From positions 1 to 64,000 of the IMG/VR virus record IMGVR_UViG_3300029893_000001: DNA of 64,000 nucleotides; one strand, 5' to 3'. The notes under the pieces are model-generated. The model did no database searches. It was not told the DNA's origin and was given only the letters and a program-made list of their open reading frames with translations. Made by a program: the position numbers and the translations under genes. Below, piece after piece: positions 49,422 to 53,199 of the stretch. Position 1 is the stretch's first letter; every line of letters begins with the position of its first letter.

Positions 49422-49716
49422 CGCTGTTCGGCCCGTTCCATGGATCTAAAGGCGGTGATAATCTCTTGGAGGTGATCTTTCGCGTACTGCTTTGCAGAAC
49501 GTGCAGACCAGAAAATGTCAAATGTGAGAGTCCTGTTGTGCCTGGTTACACACAAAGACCACTCTTTTCTGCCTCTGTACACAGACGAGGGAGTTCCCTC
49601 AATAGAGAACTCGTACGAATCCCAACCTCCGTCCGGTCCCTCGTGAGTCCAGCGGTACTGAGTCTCTCTTTGAAGAGACCAGACGGGGTTGGAGTGCTTC
49701 TTGGCTTTCTTGCTGC

Positions 49717-50220
49717 TCATTCTGTTGCGATTTCCAGTGCCTCTCGAACTCGCAAATACCCAGAACCTGTCATCGACTTCCGACCACGAGTGGCCATCTT
49801 ATCGACCCTGTTGTTCATAGCAAATGCGTAGCCGAGAGACGGGTCTTGGTGACCCTTTACATGCTCGGTGAGCACTTGGACGCCGCACTTTTGATACAAG
49901 TCTTGGATCCAACCACGAATCCGAATCATCTCTCGATCACGAACTCTGGACCTGAGCGGCCCCTTCCGTGCGTGACGGAGAGCACACTCAGAGTCCGAGC
50001 GTATTCGAAAGGCGTGAATCTCCTCTCCCCATTCACGAACGGCCAAGGATAGACCCATGTGAATGGCGAACAGCTCGGCGTGGTTGGAGCAAGTCACAAG
50101 ATCGCTGGGGCAGGAACCGTAGTGGACGAGGCGGCCTTTGTCGCTCTCAATGTACACAGCCCATCCACCAGACTGATTGTGGTGGTTGTACGAGCCGTCG
50201 GTGTAGAGCGTTACCAACAT
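49717..50220 (-). CDS. rnhA: Ribonuclease HI
   Basis: YTDGS, NHAELFAI, RSDSE, HVKGH and NNRVDKMA catalytic motifs. Confidence 0.88.
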   Translation of the reverse strand: MLVTLYTDGSYNHHNQSGGWAVYIESDKGRLVHYGSCPSDLVTCSNHAELFAIHMGLSLAVREWGEEIHAFRIRSDSECALRHARKGPLRSRVRDREMIRIRGWIQDLYQKCGVQVLTEHVKGHQDPSLGYAFAMNNRVDKMATRGRKSMTGSGYLRVREALEIATE

Positions 50221-50290
50221 GGTCGCCTCCCTTCGCTTTCCTTCTACATAACAACTTCTCCCTTTAGAATCGCGGAGGACACGATATGTA

Positions 50291-50325
50291 CCCGCTACGA
50301 TTCAGTATCCATCACGTTCCACAAA
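50291..50325 (-). repeat. Degenerate trailer-end CRISPR repeat
   Basis: CCCGCTAC-GATTCAGTATCCATCACG, same orientation as the array repeats. Confidence 0.75.
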
Positions 50326-50408
50326 AAGAAAAGTCGCATCACAGACATAGCAGCAAGTTACTTTTGGTCAAACCGCAGGGCCTCTGTCGAGGCGAGTTCT
50401 ACTATTCC

Positions 50409-50740
50409 CCCGCTACCGATTCAGCATCCATCGCGGGTTACGACCGTGCTCGCCCGAGCGTCTCGCTGGCACGCCCACTATCCCGCTACCGATTCAGCAT
50501 CCATCGCGGGTTACGACTTCCCAGCGATCGGCCCTCGCTGGGCTCGTTTCGAGCAACCCCGCTACCGATTCAGCATCCATCGCGGGTTACGACCTTGGGC
50601 GAGCGTTACCTACATCGCATGAGGCCCAGCCCCCGCTACCGATTCAGCATCCATCGCGGGTTACGACGACCAACTGAAGAACCTTGTCCCCCATGGAGTT
50701 ACGGCCCGCTACCGATTCAGCATCCATCGCGGGTTACGAC
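50409..50740 (-). CRISPR. CRISPR array, 5 identical 36-bp repeats and 4 spacers (37, 40, 38, 37 nt)
   Basis: Plus-strand repeat CCCGCTACCGATTCAGCATCCATCGCGGGTTACGAC at 50409, 50482, 50558, 50632 and 50705; orientation inferred from the degenerate trailer and the leader/cas side. Confidence 0.97.
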
Positions 50741-50990
50741 GGGTCCCTCAACTCTGCTGTATTTTCAAGGACCTACAGACTGCTTTGCGAGAGGGTCTTG
50801 CAACGTCCTTATTTTCGCGACCCGGGATGGAGACTGAAACGATACCGAGACGCCTACTCAGCCTACGTTCTCGGATGGAATTCCCCTTGATTTTCAAGGG
50901 TCTGAGTACCTTCGCGAGCGGTGCCCAGTGTCTAGCGATCACTGGACCCCTCGCGCTCGGGCCTAAGCGGGAGGCCCTTTATCACAGACG
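50741..50990 (-). ncRNA. Leader plus putative tracrRNA, anti-repeat at 50814-50849
   Basis: The minus-strand transcript pairs with the repeat at 26/36 Watson-Crick plus 4 G-U positions; extra hairpins CCCTTG/CAAGGG and CCAGTG/CACTGG. Confidence 0.72.
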
Positions 50991-52385
50991 TTACGTCTGA
51001 GAAGACTTACCTCGAAGTCTGCCCGCCGAACGCTTAGCGCTGGTTTTGGCATCGGGTAGTGCAGACGGCTTCCCGTCACGGAGAAGCATGTTCCAGACGT
51101 AGATCACGTCTACAGAACGTTCGAGAAGACACTTAGAACACCTGAATGTGGTACCATTTACGTCTTCGTTTACAGTACCGCAATTAGGGCAAGTTCTCGA
51201 ATTGTAGTCAGAAGGGACTACTTCTACCTCCCACCCCTTCTTCTTTGCGGCCCACAAAATGGCTTCCCTAAGCTGCGCCAATGGAAAACTACGAACGATC
51301 TGTTCGACGTGTTTTCCTAGTTCGGGAGCACCATCTTTTGCCGGGTTAGTCCAATCCTCGATGAGGATTCTGGTCACACCGCGGCGTTCACCCAAACGAA
51401 TGGCGTGAGCTGCGACTTCCTGGCATTTGGTTCGAACCCATCGTTCTTCTGCACCTTTGAGCTTGGTGACACGTTCGTAATGGCGTGCGTGACCGTGGCC
51501 TTTGGCTCCTGTGCCTAGCTGCCGGCGATGACTACTCAAAGATCGTAGTCTGGCTTTGTACACATCCTTGTACCGACGGATGTCTTCTCCCGTTTCAAGG
51601 ATCGTAGTGTAAGCTTCCTGTGACCCTTCCCTAGAAATAGCAACAGACAGGAAGTTTCGGACTCCACGATGAAGTGCCATCGTGCGGCCCTTCGAAACCT
51701 CTTCTACCTCAAAGGAATAGGCAACAAAAGCCTGCCACTTTTGCTTTCCATCGTGAGTCTCACGCACCAATCGAAGGTCCCCCATAGAATCTGGATTCTG
51801 AAGGATCCTCTTAATGGCAGCAAATCCACTGGTGTGGTAGGGCCGAACAACAATACGCGTCCACGGGCCCTTCAGAAGCTGTACGCTGAGAACGGCGCTG
51901 CCGTTCTCAGAGGTCAGCTTAACGCCTTGTCCAACGACGTAAATGGGTGACGGCGACTTGAACGAGGGAAGCGACATCGTCCCTTTCCACGCTTCCTTCT
52001 TCCATTTCTGCCAACGAGCGAATGCCGCGTTAGAAAGTCCAAGAACAGGGGAGCTTGATGGCTGAAGCTGACTGAGTTGGTCGTCTCCTGCATAACTCTT
52101 CTTACGGGCCACTCTGTCGGCTGCCTGCCGACGTTCATTCTCCCAGGAGTCTCTAGTTAAACGATAGGAATCGGTGCGTGGATGTAGATCTTTGCCTCCA
52201 GGGCCCAGGCCGTTTCCCTTCTTGTACTTTCCTGCTCGGTCATTCACCTCTAGGTCGGTGATGACCGAATTCAGTACGCGGTGAAGAGGAAGCTGAATAG
52301 TTCTGAGCTGGGATCCCAAGGTATCCCAGTCACAGTCTAACGGCTTAACGACCTCAAGCCGCAGTGTTGCGATGAGCGTTGCCAT
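50991..52385 (-). CDS. cas12f: Cas12f (type V-F/TnpB-derived) effector with RuvC-I Asp->His, probably nuclease-dead
   Basis: LEVVKPLDCDW, G.MSLPSFK, GAKGHG, RuvC-I MALHRGV, RuvC-II ILIEDW, SRTCPNCG..FRCSKC zinc ribbon, RuvC-III SVDVIY; adjacent array. Confidence 0.9.
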   Translation of the reverse strand: MATLIATLRLEVVKPLDCDWDTLGSQLRTIQLPLHRVLNSVITDLEVNDRAGKYKKGNGLGPGGKDLHPRTDSYRLTRDSWENERRQAADRVARKKSYAGDDQLSQLQPSSSPVLGLSNAAFARWQKWKKEAWKGTMSLPSFKSPSPIYVVGQGVKLTSENGSAVLSVQLLKGPWTRIVVRPYHTSGFAAIKRILQNPDSMGDLRLVRETHDGKQKWQAFVAYSFEVEEVSKGRTMALHRGVRNFLSVAISREGSQEAYTTILETGEDIRRYKDVYKARLRSLSSHRRQLGTGAKGHGHARHYERVTKLKGAEERWVRTKCQEVAAHAIRLGERRGVTRILIEDWTNPAKDGAPELGKHVEQIVRSFPLAQLREAILWAAKKKGWEVEVVPSDYNSRTCPNCGTVNEDVNGTTFRCSKCLLERSVDVIYVWNMLLRDGKPSALPDAKTSAKRSAGRLRGKSSQT

Positions 52386-52962
52386 GCTTAGTCTTGCTCT
52401 TCTTTGCCAACTTCTTTTCAGCTCGAAACTTTTTGACTTCTTCCTTCAACAACGCAACCTGTTGACGGAGTCTTTCGTTCTCTTCTCGGAGCTTTTCGTT
52501 TTCCTTTACGAGGACCGAGTACGATTTATTCCCAGACTTCTGTGCAGCACGCACTGTCTGCTGCTCCTTGACAATGCGCTGCGCCTGCGAATCAGTTAGA
52601 TGCCCATTGCTTTTTTGCGCAATTAGGGCTCTATCGATGGCTTCCTTCATTTCGGGAGCGCCCCTAAGACGTCCAACGTGGGCCAAAATCTTGACAGGTG
52701 CCTTTTCAACCACTTCAGGCGGCAGTGTCTTCACGGCACGGCGATAAGATGAAAACCGAGACACGTCTTGTCGATCGCGAAGAAGACCCTGAGTTTCGCA
52801 AAACTTCAGAAAATCCTGTCCGGATCCCTGCCAGAGATGGGTGTGCTCCTCAGCACTTGCCAAGAAATTGTACCACGCCTTTTCAGAATCCAAATACGCC
52901 TGTCTCAGGCGCTTAGCTTCTGTGATGAACTGTTCTGGGGTCATGGAACTAAAATCGTACAT
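52354..52962 (-). CDS. Uncharacterised Cas12f-associated protein with C-terminal coiled coil
   Basis: Overlaps cas12f start by 32 nt; LVKENEKLREENERLRQQVALLKEEV heptads; 19 nt downstream of a promoter motif. Confidence 0.75.
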   Translation of the reverse strand: MYDFSSMTPEQFITEAKRLRQAYLDSEKAWYNFLASAEEHTHLWQGSGQDFLKFCETQGLLRDRQDVSRFSSYRRAVKTLPPEVVEKAPVKILAHVGRLRGAPEMKEAIDRALIAQKSNGHLTDSQAQRIVKEQQTVRAAQKSGNKSYSVLVKENEKLREENERLRQQVALLKEEVKKFRAEKKLAKKSKTKHGNAHRNTAA

Positions 52963-52980
52963 GGGTCACCTCGTATACTA

Positions 52981-52997
52981 CAGTATCGGCAGGGTTC
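52981..52997 (-). promoter_or_regulatory. Repeated phage promoter motif driving the cas operon
   Basis: CAGTATCGGCAGGGTTC. Confidence 0.75.
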
Positions 52998-53199
52998 GAG
53001 TCCTGAAAGAGGATCAATTCTGCTTCCGTCAGAATCATTTCGTCTTCGATTTCTTCGAAGTCTGGGTACGCTTCTTTCGGAAGAGATTGGACGAAGGGAC
53101 GTACATTTTGATTTGGCCGGTCTTCATTCGGCGCTTGCATTCTGGACACGTCTCTGTAGACGTAACAATCCCCGTCACTCCATCGGCAGTAAGACATGA

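Follow-up and report, generated by a model that had tools for sequence, protein, structure and literature searches.

Among characterised effectors, those closest to the system described here are AsCas12f1 and SpCas12f1 of type V-F1, whose tracrRNAs of 169 and 153 nt, respectively, are encoded between the effector gene and the CRISPR array (PMC8548392). Both effectors are compact (422 and 497 aa, compared with 464 aa for the phage effector analysed here) and they are its best match among solved structures (8j12, 7wju and 8dzj). The order of effector gene, tracrRNA and array is the same, the likeness being one of layout and RNA length; moreover, in each of these systems the crRNA carries the repeat first and then the spacer, with the anti-repeat residing in the tracrRNA (a predicted one at the present locus). 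The RNA pairs of AsCas12f1 and SpCas12f1 are described as a 'partial duplex' (Bigelyte et al. 2021, PMC8548392), whereas here the whole 36-nt repeat is covered. Further differences are a His in RuvC-I, a conserved accessory gene upstream of the effector and location in a phage genome in which no Cas1 was found.

Huge phages encode 'dCas14', which lacks one catalytic residue and for which repression of host genes was proposed (Al-Shayeb et al. 2020, PMC7162821). As far as the main text of that paper describes it, 'dCas14' has in common with the present effector a Cas14/Cas12f-type protein, a phage of >200 kb, a missing catalytic residue and a lack of adaptation genes; a tracrRNA goes without mention in that main text, whereas here one is predicted to be encoded. 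Changed or unused RuvC chemistry is also known from Cas12m, Cas12c, TldR and dCas12f-sigmaE, compact TnpB/Cas12-type proteins that regulate by binding (PMC13565253; PMC13472631; 10.1101/2023.11.30.569447). Compared with those, the present effector has one of the three catalytic residues changed, to a conserved His, and is accompanied by an array and a putative tracrRNA; no sigma-factor partner was seen at this locus.

The TranC 'transposon-CRISPR intermediates' and a model of omegaRNA splitting were put forward by Jin et al. 2025, as relayed in PMC13565253. In the account given there, the scaffolds of TnpB omegaRNA and TranC lie at the 3′ end of the effector gene and adopt a pseudoknotted fold, as is predicted here, and the order of anti-repeat, loop, repeat and guide at the present locus is what a split omegaRNA hairpin would leave. 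From the elements as relayed, the locus differs by a true multi-spacer array, by the lack of a TnpA among the flanking ORFs scanned and by its single copy in the 392-kb genome. In an OMEGA element the guide directly follows the scaffold and there is no array, whereas here an array of five repeats is present, separated from the scaffold by an anti-repeat and a linker; scaffold copies that lack an array were seen in relatives only.

A further comparison is with the tracrRNA of type II (Cas9) systems, reportedly from work of Deltcheva et al. in 2011. In the processing of type II tracrRNA, RNase III cuts the anti-repeat:repeat duplex; Workman et al. are said to have found in 2021 that a long isoform, tracr-L, acts as a natural single guide, which is a precedent for a tracrRNA isoform in that role. 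The type II tracrRNA likewise forms a near full-length anti-repeat:repeat duplex that is long enough for RNase III, yet its effector family and scaffold are unrelated to those of the present system and its crRNA has the opposite polarity.

A tracrRNA between a Cas12f-like gene and an array is thus an expected part in its expected place, and the core finding is ordinary. More unusual are the features that surround it, namely the RuvC His, the conserved partner gene, a motif-bearing linker of fixed length and scaffold copies without an array in relatives.

Organization of the locus and its relatives

The window analysed, 64,000 nt in length, is the first 64 kb of IMGVR_UViG_3300029893_000001, a 392,328-bp virus record that is complete by CheckV. 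On the minus strand, a 202-aa open reading frame (ORF) is followed by a 464-aa ORF, 250 nt without an ORF of note, a CRISPR array, a degenerate repeat and an RNase H gene, and in the ORF list the genes neighbouring the locus all share one orientation. The features of the locus, in window positions, are as follows.

52354-52962, minus strand: accessory gene (P0043), 202 aa, its end overlapping the start of the effector gene
50991-52385, minus strand: gene of the Cas12f-like effector (P0001), 464 aa, with PF07282 and a profile match to AsCas12f
50814-50849, minus strand: anti-repeat, complementary to the entire 36-nt repeat
50741-50813, minus strand: linker (or leader) that separates the anti-repeat from repeat 1, from motif table and alignment
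50409-50740, minus strand: CRISPR array of five 36-nt repeats, all identical, with four spacers (37, 38, 40 and 37 nt)
50291-50322, minus strand: degenerate terminal repeat, 86 nt beyond repeat 5
49717-50220, minus strand: RNase H gene, 3′ of the degenerate repeat, with no terminator-like site before it

The array starts 250 nt downstream of the effector stop codon in the same orientation, and the same arrangement was found in seven array-bearing relatives. The degenerate repeat marks the trailer end, thus placing the leader on the tracrRNA side. Between repeat 5 and the degenerate repeat (50289-50408) one repeat seems to have been lost. The repeat is also partly self-complementary: in every unit, 21-22 of 36 positions agree between the plus strand and the minus-strand repeat at a 7-nt offset.

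No second match to the spacers was found in the phage's own genome, and spacers 1-4 had no exact 22-mer match in IMG/VR. One candidate target of spacer 4 (50445-50481), in the metagenome-assembled genome OY968768.1 of an uncultured bacterium (L033:5868-5889), shares an exact 22-nt core; as both flanks mismatch, including the repeat-proximal 5 nt, and only 26 of 37 positions agree overall, it was treated as a probable chance match. The RNase H gene was considered as a part of the module and rejected, the neighbour of the array being not conserved in related loci.

In the 392-kb phage genome the effector protein and the scaffold each occur once, and neither a phage-encoded Cas1 nor an RNase III was found there. 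Apart from the effector, none of the flanking ORFs matched a transposase family (eight ORFs against Pfam and four against PHROGs).

The 464-aa effector has about 40 relatives of 35-72% identity, nearly all of them metagenomic. One is in Virus Rctr197k, whose record annotates a CRISPR beside a 'transposase-like protein'; nucleotide similarity between the window and that virus is limited to the intergenic region (50836-50977, 74% identity). For comparison, 20 loci were collected. Their short-read contigs end about 30 nt into the first repeat, so that the full intergenic RNA is still present in most loci.

A covarying scaffold on the minus strand

The scaffold was delimited by an alignment of 19 sequences (151 columns), its covariation and a covariance model. 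It starts about 13 nt past the effector stop codon and consists of the following elements.

50979 to 50843, minus strand: predicted tracrRNA scaffold, about 135 nt
50985-50999, minus strand: helix 0, a hairpin spanning the effector stop codon, from sequence and aligned loci by eye
50959-50977, minus strand: scaffold helix 1
50913-50955, minus strand: scaffold helix 2 (GCGAG..CCAGTG/CACTGG..CTCGC), which encloses a variable hairpin
50902-50906 and 50857-50861, minus strand: arms of the scaffold pseudoknot
50884-50900, minus strand: variable hairpin of the scaffold (CCCTTG/CAAGGG)
50845-50876, minus strand: scaffold helix 4

Two of these hairpins, at 50884-50900 and 50913-50955, had been quoted from the window alone in a preliminary description of this DNA, and both are present. 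That description had also proposed covariance analysis across homologous loci as a check on its reading, and the outcome bears out the tracrRNA part of it: four helices, pseudoknot included, are backed by covariation in the 19 sequences. RNAalifold returned three helices with compensatory changes in 15 of 24 pairs. The pseudoknot was found by eye, as five bases before the variable hairpin that pair with five in the helix-4 loop; with this helix added, 95.1% of cells pair and double changes are seen in 20 of 29 pairs. By comparison, none of 500 shuffles reached any of these measures, and slid partners gave 28-47%. Many of the scaffold pairs are G-U and would be lost on the opposite strand, which identifies minus as the transcribed strand. 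Most relatives also have a hairpin at the position of helix 0, across the stop codon or after it, though with another sequence, as judged by eye.

The covariance model built from the alignment (R1) scored 120 bits at the window scaffold, its sole hit in the 392-kb phage. No Rfam family reached its gathering score across the whole window, and relaxed thresholds on 50250-51100 yielded chance-level matches only; on this basis the predicted tracrRNA is a new sequence family. Judged from the sequence comparisons here and below, the 250-nt intergenic region is predicted to be the minus-strand source of the long tracrRNA that belongs to a type V-F-like (Cas12f-like) system.

The anti-repeat and its co-evolution with the repeat

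The preliminary description had read plus-strand positions 50814-50849 as an anti-repeat that matches the minus-strand repeat at 26 of 36 positions, with four of the ten differences giving G-U pairs and a distance of 73 nt to the first repeat. The sequence was re-read and the match recomputed, and all three values were reproduced: as minus-strand RNA, the segment forms 26 Watson-Crick plus 4 G-U pairs with 6 mismatches, and exactly 73 nt (50741-50813) separate it from repeat 1. The claim that the anti-repeat is full-length stands as far as complementarity to the 36-nt repeat is concerned, yet its first five nucleotides, CTCGG (50849 to 50845), double as the 3′ arm of helix 4, with strong covariation. 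Therefore, the freely available anti-repeat measures about 31 nt unless helix 4 opens. Moreover, changes in this 3′ arm of helix 4 are matched by changes in its 5′ partner arm, whereas the repeat is nearly constant at its 3′ end, so that the two pairings compete.

Some similarity of this kind is expected as background, as the repeat matches itself at 22 of 36 positions with a 7-nt offset, and the anti-repeat might on that account be a fortuitous match or a decayed, functionless inverted copy of the repeat. However, 26/36 is the best match in the 64-kb window, with the runner-up outside the array at 22/36, and the top score among 20,000 shuffles of the 250-nt intergenic region was 23. Comparison among loci argues in the same direction. 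In all seven loci with arrays, whose repeats are quite different from each other, helix 4 gives way to a stretch with complementarity to the entire repeat; the full-length duplex has −45 to −58 kcal mol−1 in six of them and is weaker (−31 kcal mol−1) in Virus Rctr197k (L006). Across 15 loci, the mean duplex energy is −41.5 kcal mol−1 with the locus's own repeat as against −23.0 kcal mol−1 with the repeats of other loci, and the own repeat is the best partner of the anti-repeat in 11 of 15; in the other four, only an uncertain partial repeat was available. The anti-repeat thus tracks the repeat of its own locus across loci with differing repeats, and this co-evolution establishes function and contradicts a chance origin, which we regard as having next to no likelihood.

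In the array of L008 (L008:2132-2796) the repeats themselves differ at up to eight positions, and complementarity to the anti-repeat is almost perfect in the fourth variant.

Folding of the whole region also paired the anti-repeat with repeat 1 in cis (−120.8 kcal mol−1, z −5.1), and the segment from anti-repeat to repeat 1 alone formed a very stable cis hairpin of −59.5 kcal mol−1. Such a hairpin could act as a cis regulator: by folding on repeat 1, the anti-repeat would control read-through into the array, or how the array is processed, and would not chiefly be part of a tracrRNA. Yet the anti-repeat is fused to a large covarying pseudoknotted scaffold, a hallmark of the guide scaffolds bound by effectors, and a tracrRNA of this kind is required by the nearest effectors that have been characterised (PMC8548392); a mainly regulatory role is therefore very improbable.

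Under the reading as a tracrRNA, a hitherto uncharacterised clade of phage effectors of about 460 aa now has its guide-RNA scaffold, strand and anti-repeat defined with covariation support, and thus the system can be reconstituted.

The effector and its accessory protein

The effector scores 36.3 bits for PF07282 (Cas12f1-like TNB domain), whose cut-off is 26.3. A profile built from 29 members of the family matched AsCas12f chains with E 1e-42 over residues 4-432, and matched the Cas12f chains 9nzq, 9i8y and 7c7l as well, with other Cas12f and TnpB structures matched more weakly. The curated NCBIfam cut-offs lie above its scores, which are 48.5 bits against 450 for Cas12f2 and 62.6 against 100 for TnpB.

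The four Zn-ribbon cysteines are invariant in the family. In RuvC, Glu343 (RuvC-II) and Asp426 (RuvC-III) are kept, while the Asp of RuvC-I is replaced by His239 (codon 51669-51671). The family sequence MALHRGV aligns to MGIDLGV of AsCas12f, and the dead variants 8dzj and 7wju read MGIALGV; the site at which their depositors changed Asp to Ala aligns with H239, which identifies the position of the catalytic Asp. At that position, 28 of the 29 members have His and one has Arg, and the motif is HRG instead of DLG. The Glu and the second Asp are kept throughout the family save for one conservative swap each (D for E and E for D), both in single members. The clade as a whole thus carries His-Glu-Asp in place of an intact Asp-Glu-Asp triad.

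The preliminary description had assigned the anti-repeat to the tracrRNA of a Cas12f. The part concerning a long minus-strand tracrRNA is upheld by covariation and by co-evolution with the repeat, whereas the part concerning the effector has to be amended, for with its change of Asp to His in RuvC-I this is not a standard Cas12f. As the first RuvC Asp is replaced by His clade-wide, the complex more likely binds without cutting or has altered chemistry; the His might, on the other hand, still support catalysis.

Homologues of the accessory gene lie directly upstream of the effector gene in at least 14 related loci. The protein has a ParB-HTH/DUF3102-like N-terminal part and a C-terminal coiled coil, as suggested by an Atlas feature and by structure neighbours; since all of the latter score TM <0.5, the assignment to DNA binding is a lead only. 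In Pfam, weak coiled-coil matches were obtained only. By these neighbours, the accessory protein may be a DNA-binding partner. Together, the unusual features named above offer a natural case for asking whether miniature Cas12-type proteins serve huge phages as programmable regulators.

One transcript or two

On the sequence evidence above we propose a mechanism that we hold, taken as a whole, to be quite probable: a minus-strand tracrRNA whose anti-repeat pairs with any repeat of the array, probable read-through, at least in part, into the array, a working complex of two RNAs, and an effector for which binding or altered chemistry is likelier than standard cutting. The RNA would begin at or just past the effector stop codon and fold into the scaffold of about 135 nt, in the order of a hairpin, a helix enclosing the variable hairpin, the pseudoknot, helix 4 and then an anti-repeat of about 31-36 nt. 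Any one of the identical repeats in the array could serve as partner of the anti-repeat, and the pairing would join the crRNA (repeat plus spacer) to the effector-bound scaffold. Scaffold, linker and array would probably be made, at least in part, as one transcript reading through from the effector operon, in which the anti-repeat would first fold back on repeat 1. Host double-strand RNases would then be expected to cut the duplexes of about 30 bp, which is why the working complex is predicted to hold two RNAs. Compared with the cutting of standard Cas12f, the His-bearing complex would more likely bind DNA targets without cutting them, or act by altered chemistry; we infer target binding by the complex.

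Three metatranscriptome runs of the same study contained nothing of the locus over 49500-53000, and a DNA run confirmed the locus sequence over that range. A scan of the window over minus-strand positions 50100-52600 revealed neither a terminator-like nor a sigma-70-like site, and with the scaffold starting about 13 nt after the stop codon an intergenic promoter would not fit. Among the other loci, inspected by eye, only L007 and L015 have a run of T before repeat 1. The sequence thus allows scaffold, linker and array, all on one strand, to be one co-transcript, as the preliminary description had proposed for tracrRNA and pre-crRNA.

The linker holds two conserved blocks. One is the motif GCTCGCAA, which reads TCTCGCAA in the window (plus 50785-50792); in 12 of 15 loci it lies 45-47 nt from the anti-repeat start, and its distance to repeat 1 is a constant 52 nt. 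The other is a GAAATC-like block, GAAAAT in the window (plus 50761-50766), located exactly 18 nt downstream of GCTCGCAA and followed by 20 nt to repeat 1. The length of the linker is 60-62 nt in six of eight loci; that of the window has an 11-nt insertion which forms a local hairpin. Positions outside the two blocks vary freely across loci, and no conserved fold inside the linker was found across loci. Reading the linker as a decayed 'repeat 0' was rejected, since it is as similar to its own repeat (6.75) as to the repeats of other loci (6.9).

From their pattern, the linker blocks could be a promoter or leader of the array, a protein-binding site or an alternative pairing partner. If they were the array's own promoter or leader, tracrRNA and array would be two transcripts, with the tracrRNA ending upstream and all pairing taking place in trans. 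Two blocks at an exact 18-nt spacing and a fixed distance to repeat 1, between which the bases vary and no fold is conserved, are typical of signals at the DNA level. Furthermore, one tracrRNA for five or six repeats would be a poor stoichiometry in a co-transcript, for which reason a separate promoter of the tracrRNA or of the array may exist; the latter would solve the imbalance. However, the blocks are unlike sigma-70 hexamers, the minus-strand scan yielded no promoter-like site, and the putative promoter of the operon, read by eye in L007 and L021, TTGAC(T/G)-17-TAnnnn, is different from them. Nor is there a terminator-like site between the anti-repeat and the motifs (by scan in the window, by eye in other loci), and the GCTCGCAA block is almost a copy of the helix-2 3′ arm in the scaffold (CCGCTCGCGAAGG), which points to a role at the RNA level or in protein binding. 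Two separate transcripts are, on balance, a possible but doubtful arrangement.

The opposite arrangement, suggested in the preliminary description, is a natural single guide, one covalently joined RNA from the scaffold through the anti-repeat, the 73-nt linker and repeat 1 to spacer 1, as an intermediate between omegaRNA and split guides. An engineered Cas12f sgRNA has its parts in the same order, the linker here being a long loop, and the scaffold abuts the effector stop codon as an omegaRNA does. The near-constant linker length and the fixed distance of the motif from repeat 1 are in keeping with such a guide, as are the array-less scaffold copies of relatives described below and the published model of RNA splitting (Jin et al. 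2025, to the extent that PMC13565253 relays it). Against it, all five identical repeats need the same anti-repeat, whereas a guide acting in cis only would serve one spacer in five. The complementarity also ends at the repeat boundary, with at most about 1 bp by eye extending into the leader, and the linker lacks a conserved fold. In L008, the distal fourth repeat variant pairs with the anti-repeat better than repeat 1 does (−65.8 versus −52.7 kcal mol−1). Moreover, as the processing of type II tracrRNA suggests, a duplex of about 30 bp is a likely substrate of RNase III. We therefore consider a permanently joined guide in the window unlikely.

The window's own sequence evidence leans to an anti-repeat that acts in trans, possibly made by read-through, as in the mechanism proposed above. 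A linker that was just a discarded loop would, however, leave unexplained its fixed length and the conserved motif amid randomised positions.

Scaffold copies without an array

A search with the covariance model gave the following numbers of scaffold copies.

Phage of the window, 392 kb: 1
Virus Rctr197k: 1
298-kb phage behind L007: 3
Contig of L021: 2

The second full scaffold of the L007 phage (L007:1941-2067, which is G001:C1:172661-172787) lies upstream of the accessory gene. The unit to which it belongs (L007:1941-2215) includes an anti-repeat and, some 88 nt further on, a single repeat that matches it (duplex energy −56.6 kcal mol−1), after which no more repeats come. Its presumed guide abuts a promoter-like TTGACT-17-TAGACC, as seen by eye, and no second match to that guide was found in the same phage. 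The extra scaffold of the L021 contig (L021:2124-2239) occupies the same position upstream of the accessory gene; after helix 4, two copies of CGGGAAAATCCCCG take the place of the anti-repeat. Downstream, the extra units of L021 and L007 share AGGTTCCAGCG and GTGTGTCGnAAGCTCTTGAC. The third copy of the L007 phage (G001:C1:71607-71719, equal to L032:1501-1613, minus strand) is about 100 kb away from the effector gene, and here a 17-bp hairpin with a 4-nt loop replaces anti-repeat, linker and repeat.

By their sequence, the additional scaffolds of the L007 phage and of the L021 contig resemble single guides that stand alone. Both the L007 unit with its single repeat and the copy with the 17-bp hairpin are counted among the points in favour of a joined guide. 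A more far-reaching reading would have the effector as a non-cutting RNA-guided DNA binder with an HTH/coiled-coil partner, employing split and fused guides alike, with the unit of the window being a fused guide and thus an intermediate in omegaRNA splitting; taken with all its parts, this is distinctly unlikely. As a hypothesis, the evolutionary-intermediate reading fits the published model, and the array-less scaffold copies in relatives hint at it. The relatives are thereby a natural case for asking whether fused and split forms of the guide coexist, as the omegaRNA-splitting model predicts.

Downstream of the third scaffold copy (G001:C1:71607-71719), the sequence continues, in antisense, as far as the 3′ end of a small plus-strand ORF (L032:1139-1432), which by eye looks GroES-like.
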